The notes under the pieces: generated by a model | The model's database searches: none | Told to the model about the DNA's origin: nothing | What the model saw: only the letters and a program-made list of their open reading frames with translations | Made by a program: the position numbers and the translations under genes | In this document: one piece after another, positions 3,253 through 32,293 of the stretch | How the letters are laid out: every line of letters starts with the position of its first letter | How positions within the stretch are numbered: the stretch's first letter is position 1 | Sequence record: PQ015379.1 | Reading direction: 5' to 3' (one strand) | DNA: 64,000 nucleotides

Positions 3253-4472
3253 CAGTCTTTTGTGTCAGTCATTTTGTGGCGAGGAATATCCCACGTCACC
3301 TTCGTGTTGTTCAGAAGGTTCGACAGGTTCCGGCGCACTTTTTCATCGATCAACCACACGAGAGCGATTCGCGAGTTGTTCGGGTTGCGAACGATGGTAT
3401 CGGAGGCAATAGCAAGCTTGGTGCCGGTGTGCTTGGCCGTTTCATTGACCAGCCCAACGATTTTGATGATTTCTTGTTCAAGCTCACTACTATTCTTTAC
3501 AGTTTTCATGCGCTGGCCATCACGGGTCAGGCGCAGCGAACCTTTGACCCCGATACGGTCAAGATCAACACACAGAAGCATCTGATTTTCAAGGACCAAG
3601 AAATGGTCGCCAATCCGTTTAACGGAAAGCCCTGCGTTTTCCAGACGCGTTGGGTTTTTGTAGGCGGCAATGTCTTGGAAAATCGGAACAACAGGATAGT
3701 AAACCATCGAGAACGGGCCGCGCAGTTGCTTCGGCAGACGGCGAACAAGTTCCTTGTAGGATTCGGAAAGTTCCGCCAGTTCGTCGTCGTGCTTTTGCAC
3801 CAGTTCACGCTTGAGGGACGACAAGCGTGCTTTGCCCTTTGGATCGTTAACGTCAGCGGCCAGAATTTCCGGATAGGTGATTTGGTTCCATTTGCAATCC
3901 GGATCTTTCTTCGGCTCGCCCCCAGCCGTCTCTTCCGGCAAATACGGACGGATCGAACGCAGTTGCGAAAGGGTGAAATGACGGTCAAGGAATTCGGACA
4001 CATCGGTCAGCGCATCGTTGAGCGGACGTTTGACGCCAGCGACAAGCAGGGTGCCCGGATCGAAAGCCTTAATCAGACGTTCGATTTCTTGGGCCTTGTC
4101 TTCGTCGGAAACGTAGCTGCTGCGCACCTGTTCTTTCTGGTCAGCGGACAAACCGCCGTCCAGTTGCTGCACCAAAGCAGCATGCAGGGTGCCGACATGA
4201 TCGTGAGCGATTTTCCGAACCGGTGTGAGGTTCTGGAAAATGTCATTGCGGAGGCCGTCCGCCGTTTCTTTGACCACTTTGCGGATCTTCAGAAGCGTGG
4301 ACTTGGTGCCCGGTGGCAAGCTGCCTTGGTTGATCAAGACAGTGGATTCACTGGAAATGGTTTCCAGCGAGGCGATGATGCCTTTTTTCGATTTCAGCGT
4401 GAGTTCAGCCATGCCCTGTTCGAATGCGGACAGCGCATTCAGAACGGCATCGAATTTAGTGGTGTTGGACAC
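3252..4472 (-). CDS. hypothetical protein
   Basis: 406 aa ORF with coding-like codon use. Confidence 0.75.
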   Translation of the reverse strand: MSNTTKFDAVLNALSAFEQGMAELTLKSKKGIIASLETISSESTVLINQGSLPPGTKSTLLKIRKVVKETADGLRNDIFQNLTPVRKIAHDHVGTLHAALVQQLDGGLSADQKEQVRSSYVSDEDKAQEIERLIKAFDPGTLLVAGVKRPLNDALTDVSEFLDRHFTLSQLRSIRPYLPEETAGGEPKKDPDCKWNQITYPEILAADVNDPKGKARLSSLKRELVQKHDDELAELSESYKELVRRLPKQLRGPFSMVYYPVVPIFQDIAAYKNPTRLENAGLSVKRIGDHFLVLENQMLLCVDLDRIGVKGSLRLTRDGQRMKTVKNSSELEQEIIKIVGLVNETAKHTGTKLAIASDTIVRNPNNSRIALVWLIDEKVRRNLSNLLNNTKVTWDIPRHKMTDTKD

Positions 4473-4580
4473 TATTCAATCCCCGATTAAACGTAGTATG
4501 GGCCTTTTCGGCCCGGTAATATGAAATTACCATTTGCTCCTACAGCTTTTCACAGCCGCTTTCTGCGCTCGCCGTTATGG

Positions 4581-5021
4581 TCAGAGAGTCATCAGAAGGG
4601 TTGCCACATTTGCTTCGCGACAATTCGGTATTCGGGCTTGCTGGTGAAACCCGTTTGCCAAATAGCATGCGATGCCTGCGGCATTATTATCGGCCACGAA
4701 AAGTTTAATCGGGCGGGAACCCATACCATGATCCACCATATCAACCAGATGCGTGAGCATACCGGTCGCCACATAATTGCGGCGGTAGATTTCTTGCACA
4801 TGCACGTTGTGAATAAACACACCGTCATGATTCGCAGTCGCCAAAATGTAGCCAGCGACTTCCTGTTTGCCCTCGGCATCAATGCCGGTGGCCAGCACAA
4901 CCACGGAATCTTTTCGTGGGATGTGATCTGCAATGTAACCAATTGAAGCTGCGCATCCGTTAGACATAGCGGGCAGGCAAGTGAAATCCCCGGCCTCGAA
5001 TGTCTGATAGTCGATATCCAT
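4581..5021 (-). CDS. GNAT (RimI-like) acetyltransferase
   Basis: Probable start MDIDYQ at 5021; FIHNVHVQEIYRRNYVATGML (motif A) and LFVADNNAAGIACYLANGF (motif B). Confidence 0.8.
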   Translation of the reverse strand: MDIDYQTFEAGDFTCLPAMSNGCAASIGYIADHIPRKDSVVVLATGIDAEGKQEVAGYILATANHDGVFIHNVHVQEIYRRNYVATGMLTHLVDMVDHGMGSRPIKLFVADNNAAGIACYLANGFHQQARIPNCREANVATLLMTL

Positions 5022-5130
5022 ATACCGATCCTTTTCAAAACTGCTGGTCGTATTGCTGGTTAGTGGGCGGGAAGTAAACTTCCCAAATTGCGTAAGTGTC
5101 GTGTCGTGGGCGTCGTTGCCCAACCCTCTA

Positions 5131-5159
5131 ATGCTACCAAGAATCAATGACTTAGACAA
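5131..5159 (-). promoter_or_regulatory. host sigma70-type (early) promoter upstream of GNAT gene
   Basis: TTGTCT-17 nt-TAGCAT with extended -10 TG on the minus strand. Confidence 0.6.
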
Positions 5160-5248
5160 GGTTACGCTATATCGGAAGTTACGCCCACAGGCCCCGGCCC
5201 ACGGGGGTTGCGGGGCACCCGGCACCTAGCACAGTGTGACAGCGTGTG

Positions 5249-5698
5249 TCAAGGCCGGGCTGCGTCGAGGTCCGTGGCAGCCGACGAATGGGCGGCCTCG
5301 CACGAATTAGCAGCGTGCACAGAATTTTCGGAAGTTTCCGCACGCTGTGCCGGATCTTCCATCTTGACCGCCGTGCTGTTGGCGTCGTAACGCTTTTGCT
5401 TGCTGGTGTAACCGATGCGGCGGAAAAGCGTTTGCGTATCGTCGAAGGTTTTCTGCGAGGTGTCAGCGATATATTCAGGTAGTTCAGAAAAAATTGTGTA
5501 GCCGTACCATGCGCCGTTTGCCATGCGCCCCTTTTCGTTTTCTCGGAAAGCCTTGAGGCTGATCGCCTGATTTTTAAATTGGGGCATGCCCTGCTTAGGC
5601 ACTTTCAATTTGTAGACTTCGAGAACTTCGCCGGTCTTCAGGTTGCCGACCACGAACAATTCACGTGGCTGGATTTCTTTCAGGGCGGGCGCTTTCAT
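5249..5698 (-). CDS. hypothetical protein
   Basis: 149 aa ORF, ATGA-coupled to upstream gene. Confidence 0.7.
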   Translation of the reverse strand: MKAPALKEIQPRELFVVGNLKTGEVLEVYKLKVPKQGMPQFKNQAISLKAFRENEKGRMANGAWYGYTIFSELPEYIADTSQKTFDDTQTLFRRIGYTSKQKRYDANSTAVKMEDPAQRAETSENSVHAANSCEAAHSSAATDLDAARP

Positions 5699-6213
5699 TT
5701 TTGTTCCTTGCGTGGGGCGATGCGGTTGGTGGCGCGGGCCTGCTTTTCCATCATGATTGCGTTTGCCCGGTAGAAATCAGTTTTGAACTTCTGCACTTCA
5801 GACGTTGGCAACCATTTCTGTTTTTTGTAGTCGTAGCCGATGGCTTCGTAAAATTCGAAAGCACCGTTGACTGTGATCAGTGGAATTGCGTGGATGCCAA
5901 CCGGCAGGAAATCCGGGCCGAGGTCGAGCCACACGCCATCAGGGTCTTTCTTCTCCAGCGATTCCCGCAACATGTTGTAGCGGAAGTGCAGGTCTTCTTC
6001 GTCGGCAATCGAATAGTAGATTGCCGGATTATTTTCGGTGTCTTTTGTTGCACGGTCTTGGGGAAATGCGCGCCGAAGTTCACGGGTGCGGAAACAGGAA
6101 AGGCTAACACCGTGCCGGTAATAACCCGGCTCTACAAATTCGGGCATCAGAATTTTGAACGCACGAAATTCATGGCCGCCACAGCGTTCGATTGCGTAGG
6201 TAATTCGAGGCAT
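5695..6213 (-). CDS. hypothetical protein
   Basis: Start MPRITY at 6213 with GGAG RBS. Confidence 0.7.
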   Translation of the reverse strand: MPRITYAIERCGGHEFRAFKILMPEFVEPGYYRHGVSLSCFRTRELRRAFPQDRATKDTENNPAIYYSIADEEDLHFRYNMLRESLEKKDPDGVWLDLGPDFLPVGIHAIPLITVNGAFEFYEAIGYDYKKQKWLPTSEVQKFKTDFYRANAIMMEKQARATNRIAPRKEQK

Positions 6214-6253
6214 GTAAATCTCCACGATCTAGTCGGATTGAGTTTTGCAGCAC

Positions 6254-6282
6254 GGAAAAAGGAAAGGGGCCGACAAGGCCCC
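6254..6282 (-). terminator. intrinsic terminator
   Basis: GGGGCC-TTGTC-GGCCCC hairpin followed by a T-rich tail on the minus strand. Confidence 0.7.
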
Positions 6283-6295
6283 GATCCCACGCACA

Positions 6296-6496
6296 TCAGA
6301 TTTTGTCAGAGACTTGACGCAACCACAGCAAACCTTGCTCGATGTTGGTCATCGCGATTGCGATATCCCGACCACCTTGCAGGCCTTCGCGGCGAATTTC
6401 GTCAGCGATTTGTTGCAGCTTCACCAACTCGCTTTCGAGGCGCATTTGGCTGCTGCCGATATTGCCACGCAGGGTTTGCAGTTCGTCGCCTGTCAT
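6296..6496 (-). CDS. Acb2/Tad1-like small helical protein (candidate nucleotide-signal sponge)
   Basis: C-terminal GRDIAIAMTNIEQGLLWL matches the R.LAIA.T.LE...MW helix of Acb2-type proteins; ATGA-coupled to recA. Confidence 0.5.
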   Translation of the reverse strand: MTGDELQTLRGNIGSSQMRLESELVKLQQIADEIRREGLQGGRDIAIAMTNIEQGLLWLRQVSDKI

Positions 6497-8019
6497 TCTT
6501 CGTCGTCTCCGTCACCAGCCGCTGCGGCTTTCGCAGCTTTCTTGGTGTGCGTATTTTTGATCTGATCGAGGTACAGGTCGTAACCCTTGCCGGATTCGAT
6601 TTGACGGCGGCACCATTCGTAAAGTCGAATAGGCTTGATCTTCATCTTTTCACAGCCAGCCTTGATCAGGTTTTTGTCGCCATCGACCATTTTCTTCAGG
6701 TCCATCCACGACAGGGTGTGCCCTGCGAATGGAGTACCGTCGCCGAATTTGATCTTGTTGCGCTGGCCGGAAATCTGGCCAGTTTCTTTCAGGTACATCC
6801 ACGTGTCCCACACGCGGTCAAAGCCGAGGCCTTCACCATCTTCGTTCGCGACGTAAAGACGCAAAACCATGTTGGATTTTTGCGGACCGCCCAATTTGTT
6901 TTTGAACGCGTGACACTTGATGTAACGGTAGGTGTCAACACCTTCGCCGCTGATCGACGGTTCCTCTTCCATCATGCCCTTACCGTGCGGGATGGAAATT
7001 GGCGACATGCGGAAACGGCAGTCGGCAAAGAAGCGCAGCGCAGTACCGCACGGCTCTTTCTTGTCGGGGCCGTACATGGCCATCGGAACTTCACGCAGCT
7101 GGTTGATACCGAGCACCAGCACGCGCTTTTCTTTCATCTTGCCTTTCACGCGTTTGATACCATCGGCAAACATACGCGCTTGAGACGCCAGACCATCGGT
7201 GCCATCTTCTTTTTCGTCAGCACGACGGGAAAGCATGGCCGGGTAGGAATCCACAAGGAACACAGCCTGCGGCAGACCGTGCGGCGCCGGGACTTTGAAC
7301 TTGTTGAATTTCTTGAAGTATTTCGCGTCGTAGAAACCTGCGGTCAACTTCTGGTTGGCTTTGGTGTTGGCGTAGATGAAATAATACTCGCCGTCGATTT
7401 TCAGTACGGAAGGCAGCTTCCGCATGATATCCGACATTGCGTCGAAGAAATCTTCACCAACCGATGGCGCGAAGTAACGGATGCGCGGACGAATGAGGTA
7501 ATTGCCCTCTTTGTCCTGCACGCCGAAAACTTCTTCAGCCTGTTGCGCTTTGCCGTTGCCATTGTATTTCCACATGGCGTTGGCGTATTCGGCGCTGAAC
7601 GAACCTTCGTAGTCGAAGAAAAACGCCTTGCCCATGAAGTCGGCTTTGCGAATGATCGACCCCATGACCAAAGTTGCAAGCGTGGTTTTACACGATTGCT
7701 CTTCGCCATAGAACGTGTACCAGCCACCAGCCAGCAGGCCGCCAGCCATTTGCAGGTTCACACAGAGACTGCCGGTGTCGAGGCGGTCTTCTTTTTCACT
7801 GACAGACATGGAGGTCAGGCCGACCTTCTTTTCCATGTTGTCGATTTCGTCTTCGAAATTTGCGTAAGGGTTGAAGACTTTTTTCGCGGGTTCAGCTACA
7901 GCTTTGGAAACCGCTTTTGCAACTTTGCTCTTTGCACCTTTGGTAGCCGGGGCCTTGCTGGCGCTGGCTTTATCTTCCTTCAGGTCGAGCTTTTTCGCTT
8001 TAGTGACTGCCTTGGGCAT
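6493..8019 (-). CDS. recA: RecA/UvsX-like recombinase with Lys/Ala-rich N-terminal extension
   Basis: Walker A variant GEEQSCKTT, Walker B LVDS, INQLR, GTALRFFAD; ATG at 8019 with GGAG RBS. Confidence 0.9.
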   Translation of the reverse strand: MPKAVTKAKKLDLKEDKASASKAPATKGAKSKVAKAVSKAVAEPAKKVFNPYANFEDEIDNMEKKVGLTSMSVSEKEDRLDTGSLCVNLQMAGGLLAGGWYTFYGEEQSCKTTLATLVMGSIIRKADFMGKAFFFDYEGSFSAEYANAMWKYNGNGKAQQAEEVFGVQDKEGNYLIRPRIRYFAPSVGEDFFDAMSDIMRKLPSVLKIDGEYYFIYANTKANQKLTAGFYDAKYFKKFNKFKVPAPHGLPQAVFLVDSYPAMLSRRADEKEDGTDGLASQARMFADGIKRVKGKMKEKRVLVLGINQLREVPMAMYGPDKKEPCGTALRFFADCRFRMSPISIPHGKGMMEEEPSISGEGVDTYRYIKCHAFKNKLGGPQKSNMVLRLYVANEDGEGLGFDRVWDTWMYLKETGQISGQRNKIKFGDGTPFAGHTLSWMDLKKMVDGDKNLIKAGCEKMKIKPIRLYEWCRRQIESGKGYDLYLDQIKNTHTKKAAKAAAAGDGDDEE

Positions 8020-14466: not shown

Positions 14467-15141
14467 TTACAGGGCCTCTAAACGTTTCTTCACAATGTCG
14501 AATTGGTACGGGTGGCCTGCCAGCACCAGCAAGCTGTTTTTCTTTTTGCGCTTCAAGATTTTATCCAGCTTCATTCCGCTGATATCCAGAACGCGCCCGC
14601 CCTTTTCGGGGATCTTGTCACGGTGGCCGTTGTAAACCAACAGCTGCACCTTCGCATCTGCTGTCGCGTACGACAATTCCGAGAATTTCGGCGGATCAAA
14701 TCTTTCCGTCACGCAATCCCGCACCTCGACCGTCATGCCCAGTCGGTACGCCTGATAAATCACGGTGTGAGAAACGGATGGATCAACGACGAACGTGATG
14801 TAGCCGCCCGGCTTCAGGATGCGTTGCAGGTGGCGCATTTCTTCCATCTGCTTATTGCGCCATGCGTCGGGGCGTAACCAGTTGAACGCGTTCAGCACGT
14901 GGTGTTCCGGGTACGCGTAGACGTAGGAAAAACATTCGTCTTTGATTTTGCGCAGGCTGTGCAGCAAGGTGCCTTGCCACACGGTGCCATGCTCATTGCT
15001 GAATCGGCGTTCGGGCACATTCTGATTGTGGGAAGTAACGATAAAACCGTTATGCTCTTCGCAGCGTGTGATGGTTGGCACGTCGCCTACCAGCACGCAA
15101 CCACAATTGAAGTGGTTAATCATCGTGTCGTAACGACTCAT
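14467..15141 (-). CDS. degenerate SAM-dependent (DNA N4/N6-like) methyltransferase with Cys-rich N-terminus
   Basis: LLHSLRKIKDECFSYVYAYP and EMRHLQRILKPGGYI resemble the N6_N4 MTase N-part, but DPPY is not intact; start uncertain (15141 or 15123). Confidence 0.45.
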   Translation of the reverse strand: MSRYDTMINHFNCGCVLVGDVPTITRCEEHNGFIVTSHNQNVPERRFSNEHGTVWQGTLLHSLRKIKDECFSYVYAYPEHHVLNAFNWLRPDAWRNKQMEEMRHLQRILKPGGYITFVVDPSVSHTVIYQAYRLGMTVEVRDCVTERFDPPKFSELSYATADAKVQLLVYNGHRDKIPEKGGRVLDISGMKLDKILKRKKKNSLLVLAGHPYQFDIVKKRLEAL

Positions 15142-27563: not shown

Positions 27564-28076
27564 TCAGCGTTTCTTGCCACCGCAGGTCGTGCACGGGCGA
27601 GGCTGAATCTTTTTGCGAATGGTTTGATAGGTGATGTTGCTCGATTCGATGGTCATCAGGCTGGCAGCGGTCTGGCCCGTGGTATCGAAAATCTGCTTCA
27701 TCTTGGCTTTGTCGAACATGGAATCGTACGGGAATTTCTTCTGGTTCGTCTGTTCCCACAGCGGAATGTCGAAGGCTTCACGTTTGATTTGATCGATTTC
27801 AAACTGGCTCAGGATCGGCGCGATGTTCGGGTTAACGCGGTGAGCCTTCACCACGCGCCCGTTCTGGTCGATCATCTGAAGAGCCGTCATTTCGACTTCC
27901 AGATTCATCAGGCTGACCATTGGCCCGTGCTGCACGGCAGGCACCGCGAACCACGTATCCTGCAACGGCAGTTCCTGCCCTTCGAGAATCGGCAGGTGAA
28001 TCGACCGCATGAAACAATACACGATCAGATTGCAATCCATATCCGAATCGTGCGTGTAGATTTTTTGATCGCTCAT
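27564..28076 (-). CDS. hypothetical protein with C-terminal CTTCG
   Basis: 170 aa ORF. Confidence 0.7.
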   Translation of the reverse strand: MSDQKIYTHDSDMDCNLIVYCFMRSIHLPILEGQELPLQDTWFAVPAVQHGPMVSLMNLEVEMTALQMIDQNGRVVKAHRVNPNIAPILSQFEIDQIKREAFDIPLWEQTNQKKFPYDSMFDKAKMKQIFDTTGQTAASLMTIESSNITYQTIRKKIQPRPCTTCGGKKR

Positions 28077-28078
28077 GA

Positions 28079-29670
28079 TTACTCCACAGGGAGGCCCGAA
28101 ACGGTCGGGTCTGGTTTTTTCATGTAGTTCTTCACACGCTCGGCAGTGTCACGCGCTGCACGGGCGCCCGGTTCACGCTGATCATCTTTCAGGCCTTTGA
28201 TTTCAGCCTTGATCGACTTGATCTTGGTTTTCAGGTCCGACTCTTCCAGCGCCGCCAACTGGCGCACTTTCCGTTCGAGGATGATTTCTGCATCGGCTTC
28301 CGGCATTTTCAACGCCTTGGCCAGCACAGCAGCAGGGGTTTTCGACGCCAGAACTTTCGGCAAAGCTTTCAGCAGCTTTTCACGATTCTGCACCGCATAC
28401 AGATAGACTTCGTTCAGGTGCAGTTCTTTGGCAGCCTTGTCCAGCAGGTAGCCGATCAGACGCTCTTCGAGTTTGATCCGATACTTGATCCACGCGCCAA
28501 AGTATTGGACGTAGTTCACGTATTTGAATGTGTTGGTTTCGTCGCCCGGCTTGCGGATCGTGATACCCAGTCGGTAACTGACCGAGGAACGAATCGCCTT
28601 GTCAACTTTGGCGCAGACTTCATCGAATTTTTCTTCGTTCATGTTTTTCGGACATGACACTTCGATGTGTGCACCGTATGGGCCAGCGTGCTTGTTCTTT
28701 TTGCCGGAAGTGTTCGACGCGTCTTTCACGCCGTCAATGTTCGCCAGCTTCTGCAACGCCTTGTAAACGCCCTCTTCACCGGCCAGCGTGCCGGGGCAGA
28801 AGATTTGATGCGAATGGTGCGTTTGGCCACGTCATAATCGACAAGGGGCATGTACTGCACCGAGCCTTTGCCGGTCGCCATCAGTTCTTCGATTTGTTCA
28901 TCGGACGAAACGTCGATACAGCCAAACGGGTGCACGATCTTCAGAGCAGCAGCCAATTTCTTCGGCGTGTATTCCTTGCCGTTCAACATGTCGATAACGA
29001 CTTTCGAAACAGACGCCACCGAGAACGCAGGGTTGCCCACCTTCACCCCGTAGGCCGGGGGCGGCGTCGAGGTCAGGAAGAACAGAGTTGGCAGCAGCGC
29101 AGGCAGGTACAGCGGCAACTTTTCGTCGTTGGAAAAGTTCGGTTCCATCGGTACGACTTTCAGATACTGCGAGTCGAGCAGGAACATGTCCGCGAATTTC
29201 GATTTTTTCGCTTCGGTGTAACGATACGCCGATGCCGACGTGCCGTCAGGTTTACCCCAGCCACCTTGGCCCCACACCAGCGGCGGGTTGCTGTTGGCAA
29301 TCGTCACCATCGCGCCATAGCACGCGGAATCGCCGTGCGGGTGATATTTACCGATGGCGTCACCGACCGTACGTGCCGATTTCTTGAAACCTCCGGTCGA
29401 ATGCAGCTTGAGGCCGTCGAGTGCCCACAGCACGGCGCGGTGCACAGGCTTCAGGCCGTCGCGGAAATCAGGGACCGCACGATCTTCCACCACGTACGAC
29501 CCGTAAATGTGCAACGCAGCATCGGAAAATTCGTTGATCGTTTGCTGTTTTGTTTCGAGGGCCTTCGTCTCGAATTTCAGCAGCGGCGTTTTCGCCACGG
29601 ACTGCTTGGTTTTTGGGGCGGCGGTCACTTTCTTCGCTTTGACCTTCGCCACTTCTTTCGTCTTCGCCAT
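28079..29670 (-). CDS. gyrA: type IIA topoisomerase A subunit (GyrA/ParC-like, no beta-pinwheel CTD), interrupted by a -1 frameshift near 28801
   Basis: RAVPDFRDGLKPVHR, KSARTVGDAIGKYHPHGDS, catalytic AYRYTEA; adding one base at ~28801 gives IRIKS-FCPGTLAGEEGVYKALQKLAN and a 530-aa ORF. Confidence 0.85.
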
Positions 29671-29960
29671 CAGTTAACGTTCTCCGGGTCGATGCCCATA
29701 GCCAGCAAGGCTGCATGCAGGCGGCGCCATTCGGCATCTTCGAACACGACCCGATGCGCTTTTACCACGTCCATGCATTCGGTGTAGTAGCGACCAATTT
29801 CCTCAAGCGATTCAAGGCAGGCCATGGCCGTGGTGCGCGGAAATTTCGAAGTGGCCTTGATTTTCATGCCGTAGCTACGCGCTTCCGGCAGGATTCCGTT
29901 CAATTTGTGTTCGGCTTCGTTTACAAGGTCACGCATTTGATCCAGTGTCAGTTCTTTCAT
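29670..29960 (-). CDS. 96-aa hypothetical protein between gyrB and gyrA
   Basis: Start MKELTL at 29960; TAATG overlap with restored gyrB stop and TGATG overlap with gyrA start. Confidence 0.7.
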   Translation of the reverse strand: MKELTLDQMRDLVNEAEHKLNGILPEARSYGMKIKATSKFPRTTAMACLESLEEIGRYYTECMDVVKAHRVVFEDAEWRRLHAALLAMGIDPENVN

Positions 29961-32049
29961 TAATCTTCCAGCCCCAAAAGTTTGCGACGGTTCACCGCGT
30001 CTTCCGACACAACGGCACGGAACCATTGTTCATCGGCGGCGCTGGCAAACGGGTTGATTTGAATCAGTTTGCGGTGGCTCGGATCGAAGGCGATTGGGCC
30101 GATATATTCCGGGCCAACTTCCCCCAACCTTTGATGCGCACCAGATCCTGATCTTTTACAGATTTCGGCGCAGCTTTACGGCATTCGTCGAAGGTCATTC
30201 CGCCGTAGAGCGTACCTTTCGAATCGAGTGCAGCATACAGCGGGGCCTGCACGCAGAACACACGGCCTTGCTTGAACAGGTCAGGCAGCAGGCGGTACAA
30301 AACTGCGAGATACAGAACCGCGATGTGGCCGCCGTCCGGGTCCGGGTCAACGAGGAACAGAACGGATTTCACGCGAAGTTTTTCAACGTCGATTTTCGGA
30401 CGCTCGGCCTTCGGGTCCATGGTCTTCAGGTCGCAGCCCATGGCGATCAGGAAATTGGAAATATCCTTGTGCGTGATGATTTTCGCAATCGGGGCCTTCA
30501 GGGCGTTCAGTGGTTTACCACCGGCTGCCAGAACTTCCTGATAATGCGTGTCGCGGGCGTCGTCGGACGGGCCTTTTGCCGAGTCACCTTCAACCACGAA
30601 CAGTTCACGTTCCCACGGTTTGCAGTGCGGGCTAACAGCCAGCTTGGCAGGCAGTACGCCTTTGCCTTTTTTCTTCACATCGGCCATGGATTTCACGACA
30701 GCGGCCAGTTCTTCCCGGCCCTTGTTCATGATCAAGGCGCGCTTGATGATATCCTTGGCGACTTTCGGGTTCGCTTCGAAATATTTGTCGAAAGCGGGGA
30801 ACAGAAGTTCTTCCACTTCCTTGTCAACTTTCGAACTCAGTTTGTCCTTCACCTGCGAGGTGTAGGCCGCGCCGTGCATACGCCAGTCGAACATCCCGGT
30901 GAGGCCGATCAGCAGGTCGGAACTGGTCCAACCTTGGCCCGCTTTTTTACTCTTCGCTGGTTTCTTTTCCGGCACGTGTTTTTTCACAGCCTTGGAAAGT
31001 GCGGCGGTGAAACCAGTCACGTGCGAACCACCGTCGATGGTTGGCGAGGTGTTCACGAAAGTCAGGAAGTGGTCGGCGTCCGTGTGGTCAGACCAAACGA
31101 GGGCACAGGTGATGTTGTCGTTTTTGAACGTGAACGGTTTGCCTTGCGGCACCAGATCGCGCTGTTCGCACATGTCTTTTGCGACGAAAGCCAGATCCTT
31201 TTTGTTCAGATACACATGGTCGTCACGCTTGCCCTTCACGATGGAAGAGAAACGAATTTCCAGACCGGGGTTGAGCATGGCCATGTTGTTCAGCCACTGC
31301 GCCACATCCTTGACCACAGGAATTGCACGGCGGAAATCTTTTGGCAATTTCTTGCCCCGGCGTGCGTCTTCGGAACAGACGGTTTGGTCGAGTTCCAGTG
31401 CGACGATGGTTCCGTATTTTTTCAGGCTATCTTTCAACAGGCCCATAACGTCTTTATCGACGGCCTTGCAGGGCAGCGGGTTTTTCCCCTTGGAAATGAT
31501 TTCGCCTTTGCTGTACACCTGCGTTTGCAGCTTGCCGCCGTACGTGGTCCAGACGCGCATGCGATCCGAAACCGCGTTCACCGCCGACATACCGATGCCG
31601 TGAGTACCCGCCGAAGTTTTGTACGCCGAATCGTTGAACTTGGCGCCCGCGTGGGTCTTCGTGTAGGCAGCGGTCATTTTGCTGATTTTCGTACCGTCTT
31701 TCATTTTCACGAAGTCGGTAGGAATGCCGCCCGCTTGGTCAGCGATGATGTAAATTTCGGCGTCGATGTTGAGGATAACTTCGATCACCTTGTTACGGCC
31801 TGCCACGTGTTCGTCGTAGCAGTTATCGACGCCCTCTTTGACGCAGCGGTAAGCCATGGCCGACCCACGATCACCGAGGTACATCGCCGGGTTTTCGCGG
31901 ATACCGTCGAGGCCTTCAAGGACCGTGAAATCTTCCTGCGCGCTCACTTTCTTTTTGGTGGCTTTCTCGACGCCTTGTGCCACCTTCGTTTTCTTCGGTT
32001 TTTCTTCAGCGGCAGCTTTCGCTTTCGCCTTCACTTTCTTCTCGGCCAT
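29960..32049 (-). CDS. gyrB: type IIA topoisomerase B subunit (GyrB/ParE-like), interrupted by a -1 frameshift at 30121-30125
   Basis: GIRENPAMYLG, EGVDNCYDE, GTHGIGMSAVNAVS, VVEGDSAKG, VDPDPDGGHI; one extra G in TGGGGG restores KGWGEVGPE...FDPSHRKLIQI...RRKLLGLED. Confidence 0.9.
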
Positions 32050-32293
32050 TGGGGTTCTCGATGGATTCAAATTCTTCGGTTGTGCCGACCCACGCCAGAC
32101 GACAAGTCAACAGTTCGTCGGCTGTGAAATCTGACATGCGGCGGTAATTGTTGTCGAACAGCCAGTGCTGGTACGCGGCCCGCGACACGGAGCCGGGCGG
32201 ATACTCGCTGTAGAAACGTTGCACGTACCCTTCAAAATTATATGGCGCAATTTTGATGTGTTCGCCCCACGGTGTCACCATGACCAGTTCCAT
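32006..32293 (-). CDS. hypothetical protein
   Basis: 95 aa ORF. Confidence 0.55.
   Translation of the reverse strand: MELVMVTPWGEHIKIAPYNFEGYVQRFYSEYPPGSVSRAAYQHWLFDNNYRRMSDFTADELLTCRLAWVGTTEEFESIENPNGREESEGESESCR

Follow-up and report, generated by a model that had tools for sequence, protein, structure and literature searches.

The closest described counterpart of the locus analysed here is the gene pair gp147 and gp148 of phage Lu11, which encode proteins of 698 aa and 541 aa and are both uninterrupted. The bacterial enzymes of this kind, GyrB/ParE together with GyrA/ParC, combine a GHKL ATPase, a transducer, Toprim, a GyrB C-terminal tail and a winged-helix domain with the RYTE tyrosine, and phage T4 encodes a type IIA enzyme of several subunits, topoisomerase II (gp39, gp60 and gp52), whose A-type subunit is short. 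T4 gene 60 is a case of recoding, in which a 50-nt hop (translational bypass) takes place near the Toprim region. A precedent of another sort is provided by homopolymer and other indel errors in deposited phage genomes, where long ORFs are split into adjacent CDSs that carry the same name.

The window, by which we mean the whole stretch of 64,000 nucleotides that was analysed, comes from the record of Pseudomonas phage HRDY3 (PQ015379.1), to which positions 28000-32200 are 100% identical. HRDY3 is a giant (jumbo) phage from pond water with a record of 313,683 bp, and window position w corresponds to record position w + 124,000. Lu11 is the sole other phage record with a DNA-level match to 28000-32200, at 77%. 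In GenBank the minus strand of this region carries a 'DNA gyrase B' of 661 aa, a hypothetical protein of 96 aa and, side by side, two CDSs that are both named 'DNA gyrase/topoisomerase IV subunit A'. The features, in window coordinates, are as follows.

30064..32049, minus strand: large (GyrB/ParE-like) subunit, frame-0 part (XDJ15144.1, 661 aa in GenBank)
30121..30125, minus strand: G5 run (C5 on the plus strand), one G short of the G6 of the closest relatives
29960..30121, minus strand: C-terminal 53 codons of the large subunit, EVGPEY...LGLED, and stop, in the -1 frame
29670..29960, minus strand: 96-aa ORF between the subunit genes (XDJ15143.1)
28726..29670, minus strand: A-like (GyrA/ParC N-terminal, T4 gp52-type) subunit, frame-0 part (XDJ15142.1, 314 aa)
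28797..28802, minus strand: second one-base deletion site, TCTTC against TCTTTC (Ser-Phe) in the nearest relative and Lu11
28079..28801, minus strand: C-terminal 240 codons of the A-like subunit, FCPGTLAGEEG...GLPVE, in the -1 frame (part annotated as the second 'subunit A' CDS, XDJ15141.1)

From the ATG at 32049 the large-subunit frame reads through ...VRIKGWG and continues as KLARNISAQSPSIRATAN to a TGA stop at 30064-30066. The real protein ends at the Gly codon 30121-30123, and the next 18 codons are out-of-frame junk. The -1 frame, taken from 30121, gives EVGPEYIGPIAFDPSHRKLIQINPF...RRKLLGLED and closes with a TAA (29960-29962) that overlaps the ATG of the 96-aa ORF. Pfam places DNA_gyraseB at residues 318-454 (E 3e-24) and Toprim at 489-605 (E 9e-10) of frame 0, preceded by HATPase_c at residues 74-177 with 26.1 bits, marginally below the 26.4 cut-off; the order GHKL ATPase, transducer (DNA_gyraseB), Toprim is that of a B-type subunit. 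The protein also matches PHROG 543, topoisomerase II large subunit (E 2e-133), and GyrB in the PDB (E 5e-67). The -1 tail matches Pfam DNA_gyraseB_C at E 1e-3, under the curated cut-off, and is 83% identical to Lu11 and 96% identical to the C-terminus of the nearest relative, a 320-kb ENA contig (L098). The C-terminal motif of the KGLGEM type is consequently not found in a single frame of the HRDY3 record, the -1 shift dividing it into KGWG and EVGPE.

The A-like subunit starts at 29670, reads through ...RTIRIKS up to about 28800 and then as junk to 28726, and its -1 frame resumes at FCPG and runs to 28079. Both halves of the expected domain are present in two frames: Pfam DNA_topoisoIV is matched at positions 1-223 of 432 in frame 0 and at 260-417 in the -1 frame, and PHROG 551 at positions 4-243 and 251-463, respectively. 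Against the PDB the subunit finds ParC at E 1e-43, with AYRYTEAK aligned to the MRYTEAK of ParC (the RYTE active-site tyrosine motif), and its -1 part is 93% identical to residues 291-530 of the L098 protein. A DNA alignment with Lu11 and the nearest IMG/VR relative puts the second break at TCTTC near 28799, in a TT run 1.3 kb downstream of the first. The earlier note, made from the letters alone, had described the -1 frameshift in the large subunit, with frame-0 KGWG followed by junk and a GyrB/ParE C-terminus in the -1 frame, the stop/ATG overlap at the end of that tail, and the restoration of a full-length protein by one extra G in the five-base run at 30121-30125. All of this was borne out, since the added G gives 643 + 53 = 696 aa, the same length as the nearest relative P0125. 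Its claim that the partner subunit also carries a -1 break 1.3 kb away was likewise correct, with the exception of the placement of that break in a C run; the neighbouring C4 run was considered and rejected, as the DNA alignment places the missing base in TCT(T)TC.

Judged by their domains and database matches, the two genes are a phage-encoded two-subunit type IIA topoisomerase. They form an orthologous pair with Lu11 gp147/gp148, with conserved order and neighbourhood and an amino acid identity of 82-83% and 74% on both sides of each break, and differ from Lu11 in the two one-base gaps and in the extra 96-aa ORF between the genes. All the bacterial elements listed above are found in HRDY3; its A-like subunit, however, has about 530 aa without the C-terminal wrapping domain of GyrA/ParC, and both of its subunits carry Lys-rich N-terminal tails that set them apart from the bacterial enzymes. 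The HRDY3 enzyme resembles T4 topoisomerase II in being phage-encoded and of several subunits, in its short A-type subunit and in sharing PHROG 543 and 551, although the T4 chains in the PDB (8ylu and entries beginning with 8yo) match at E 1e-15 to 1e-17 and are more distant than the bacterial enzymes (5e-67 and 1e-43). The large-subunit break is also unlike that of T4 gene 60, as it consists of a single missing base at the KGxGE motif near the C-terminus and is common to no relative.

The comparison with orthologues, which had been proposed as a check, found the break to be unshared. Besides Lu11 we used 41 related IMG/VR loci, in which the continuity of the frame was tested for each gene by tblastn with the Lu11 proteins. 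Both genes occupy a single frame in 41/41 of these loci, save for an insertion in one of them (L074) elsewhere in the large-subunit gene, and KGWGEV is in frame in every one; set against them, HRDY3 alone is split into two frames in both genes. At the first site the ten closest IMG/VR loci have TGGGGGGAA (G6) and Lu11 has TGGGGTGAA, compared with TGGGGGAA in HRDY3, and at the second site the closest IMG/VR locus has ATCAAATCTTTCTGC compared with ATCAAATCTTCTGC. The ENA contig, at 92% amino acid identity, carries genes of 696, 94 and 530 aa in the same order, each in a single frame. A search for near-identical contigs by means of an exact neighbouring protein returned none, the closest retrieved contig being 92% identical in protein. 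The parts that follow the breaks are 96% (B) and 93% (A) identical to the ENA relative, no lower than the parts that precede them, and in the 22 kb around the topoisomerase genes no further gene was found to be frame-split relative to the same contig. The breaks are private to the HRDY3 record.

Public sequencing runs served as a proxy for the reads of HRDY3. Part of the window is contained in 12 public runs, the best of which shares 0.65 of the sampled words, so that none of them is HRDY3 itself. Logan contigs from four runs of four studies, about 96-99% identical to HRDY3, were aligned to window 28000-32200 (about 4.2 kb). An extra C behind 30120 (plus strand) is present in all four, and an extra A behind 28799 (plus strand) in all three that cover the second site. 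One run (X1) provides a 20-kb contig that covers all of the 4.2 kb, from which it differs by 50 substitutions and exactly two gaps, and another (X3) provides contigs with one gap each; no other indels relative to HRDY3 were seen over the 4.2 kb, except for a compensating indel pair in X5 only. The six Cs that were to have been sought in the reads are accordingly seen by proxy, in contigs of four independent runs of close relatives. An indel that is private to one record and absent from near-identical independent sequences, as both of these are, is what distinguishes an indel error in a record.

The earlier note had also stated that other long conserved genes look intact. This holds for the 22 kb around the site and, relative to Lu11, for the whole window, but fails for the record as a whole. 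A genome-wide tblastn census based on the best-conserved frame, comparing the whole HRDY3 record with Lu11 minus its last 538 bases, identified five Lu11 ORFs that are split over two frames in HRDY3, namely both topoisomerase genes and three others. (An attempt at a census by stop-to-stop ORFs was dropped, being too noisy from antisense ORFs and gene boundaries.) DNA alignments showed that the record has at least three further private one-base deletions, with one base missing at each of the following places, given in record coordinates.

~86,59x, minus strand: equivalent of the Lu11 1052-aa ORF (tail protein), continuous in Lu11 and in 6/6 IMG/VR relatives
~214,85x, plus strand: equivalent of the Lu11 804-aa ORF, adjoining the tail sheath gene, continuous in Lu11 and in 14/14 IMG/VR relatives
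~240,37x (L016/L017 junction), plus strand: equivalent of the Lu11 1170-aa ORF, continuous in 7/7 relatives including Lu11

The site at ~86,590 (L009 ~6,590-6,611) reads TCTCGTTGG in relatives and TCTCTTGG in HRDY3, and the deletion splits a tail protein of ~1050 aa into CDSs named 'tail protein' and 'Ig domain protein', which match consecutive parts of phrog_14098 'tail protein' (positions 1-174, then 340 onward). At ~214,850 (L015 ~14,840-14,860) one base is lost in a AAGAAAGA-type stretch, and the fragments of the ~800-aa protein match consecutive parts of phrog_13325 (positions 1-110, then 139-776). The deletion at ~240,365, just past an acidic EEEEEEEE linker, splits a protein of ~1190 aa into 847 and 369 aa. 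GenBank lists the split fragments as separate neighbouring CDSs beside genes for the baseplate wedge and the tail sheath. In all five cases it is HRDY3 that lacks a single base, which amounts to about one deletion per 60 kb on 314 kb, and the recurrence of the same kind of indel in unrelated conserved genes is again as expected of errors in a record. When the comparison was turned round, about five ORFs of HRDY3 proved frame-split in Lu11 (~39,335; 160,980; 185,160; 202,915; 227,400); mistakes in the Lu11 record, which is the older one, or genuine differences in gene structure could account for this.

We consider it likely that the breaks are errors in the deposited HRDY3 record, arising from sequencing or assembly. 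This is the most likely explanation because the missing base is present in every relative and the record has three other long genes broken likewise, and sequencing error, which the earlier note had listed as one option, is favoured by these further deletions as well as by the private nature of the breaks. Five real truncations, structural genes included, would be unlikely in a plaque-forming phage; the fact that all five are losses of one base indicates a one-sided bias; and post-break frames that remain 93-96% identical to the nearest relative show no decay. We infer that the deletions are technical and not in the phage DNA. The deposited sequence would then contain a few erroneous single-base deletions, including the two in the topoisomerase genes, with G6 read as G5 at one site and TTT read as TT at the other, and the phage itself would probably make an ordinary two-subunit type IIA topoisomerase consisting of a 696-aa GyrB/ParE-like and a 530-aa GyrA/ParC-like subunit. 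The annotation conforms to the known pattern of indel errors in phage genomes, in that 'subunit A' appears twice and 'tail protein' stands beside its own continuation. Some observations count against a record error. A long homopolymer, with five or more bases, is present at just one of the five sites; two of the five lie 1.3 kb apart in one enzyme; and the similar number of frame differences in Lu11 relative to HRDY3 means that a few per jumbo-phage genome are not unusual in themselves. The chance that two of five random points on 314 kb fall within 1.3 kb of each other is about 8%, which is mildly unusual and not remarkable.

An unlikely alternative is that the deletions are real mutations of the HRDY3 isolate, inactivating both topoisomerase subunits and truncating or splitting the other genes, for example during laboratory passage with the host gyrase or topo IV substituting for the phage enzyme. 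The deposited record does show the breaks, and the clustering of two of them within 1.3 kb in the two subunits of one enzyme could be understood if the loss of one subunit left the other free to decay. The close relatives differ by 1-4%, which means that none of the runs represents the same strain, and, to judge from the T4 DNA-delay mutants, the phage might tolerate the loss of its topoisomerase. Real deletions would imply that a jumbo phage of the Lu11 type can dispense with a topoisomerase of its own. However, this explanation needs five independent frameshifts in one viable phage, including one in a tail protein and one in a protein beside the tail sheath gene, all five of them deletions, and the post-break frames show no sign of a relaxed constraint. 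The suggestion of a lab-passaged or decaying topoisomerase can thus be kept in part, as a less likely real mutation, while its decay is contradicted by the 93-96% identity of the post-break frames.

A sequence pattern recurs at most of the sites but was given no weight in the choice between these explanations. CCCG starts 5-8 nt downstream (sense strand) of the missing base at four of the five, namely 30121, 28799, ~86,590 and ~214,850, and not at the fifth; as background, 2.7% of the positions on a strand have CCCG within a 4-9 nt window, and the pattern was noticed post hoc. It might reflect a context-specific basecalling error or a DNA modification motif. It is decidedly improbable that all five deletions are real and came about perhaps through a context-specific deletion process at such sites, which would leave a viable jumbo phage with its topoisomerase and several large virion-associated genes lost or split.

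Programmed -1 ribosomal frameshifting or transcriptional slippage that joins the frames in both subunits and so co-regulates the enzyme could draw on the -1 direction of both shifts and on the first site, where a P-site tRNA-Gly that slipped from one GGG onto the GGG overlapping it would yield exactly the conserved KGWGEV. It is nevertheless very improbable and was rejected, and the phase variation that had been proposed beside it finds no support either: the breaks are conserved in none of more than 45 relatives, including those 96-99% identical (0/41 IMG/VR loci, Lu11, L098 and four Logan runs); there is no X-XXY-YYZ heptamer, so that the first site would need a bare P-site slip on G-GGG; AAA-TCT-TCT at the second site offers no -1 re-pairing, as the tRNA of TCT cannot re-pair on ATC, and a later slip at C-CCG in the A-like gene would replace a Phe-Cys that is conserved in 12 Lu11-like relatives; the 90 nt that follow each site are no more stably folded than their shuffled versions (z -1.0 and +0.27), which gives neither site a stimulatory RNA structure downstream; and the three other breaks of the record have unrelated contexts. 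Known polymerase slippage requires runs far longer than 5 G or 2 T. Nothing in the analysis supports a new recoding mechanism.

The finding is above all a matter of quality control, as PQ015379.1 carries a 'DNA gyrase B' annotated in truncated form, a 'subunit A' in two fragments and at least three other split long genes, and mining the HRDY3 genome for recoding, pseudogenes or split proteins would mislead. Opposite the large-subunit gene, the plus strand has an open frame of 677 aa (window 30094-32127), which exceeds the broken sense ORF in length; in this genome of 53% GC it is a trap for gene calling by ORF length.

The region between the two subunit genes is variable. The 96-aa ORF of HRDY3 has no Pfam or PHROG match and is absent from Lu11, whose subunit genes directly abut, and the 94-aa spacer ORF of the ENA contig gave no tblastn match to the window at E 1e-5. 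The spacer ranges from 0 in Lu11 to roughly 0-800 nt in other relatives, and may be a hot spot for the insertion or replacement of small ORFs. The one IMG/VR locus with an insertion in the large-subunit gene (IMGVR_UViG_3300011226_000001, 3944-7854) carries this subunit as two naturally separate pieces, an ATPase/transducer ORF of 579 aa and an ORF of 262 aa, the latter beginning with an intein C-terminal splicing piece that is followed by Toprim. The two pieces are separated by an antisense ORF of 402 aa that contains DUF7487 and a TnsA-like endonuclease domain, and the arrangement resembles a 'fractured gene' in which a split intein is accompanied by a free-standing endonuclease.
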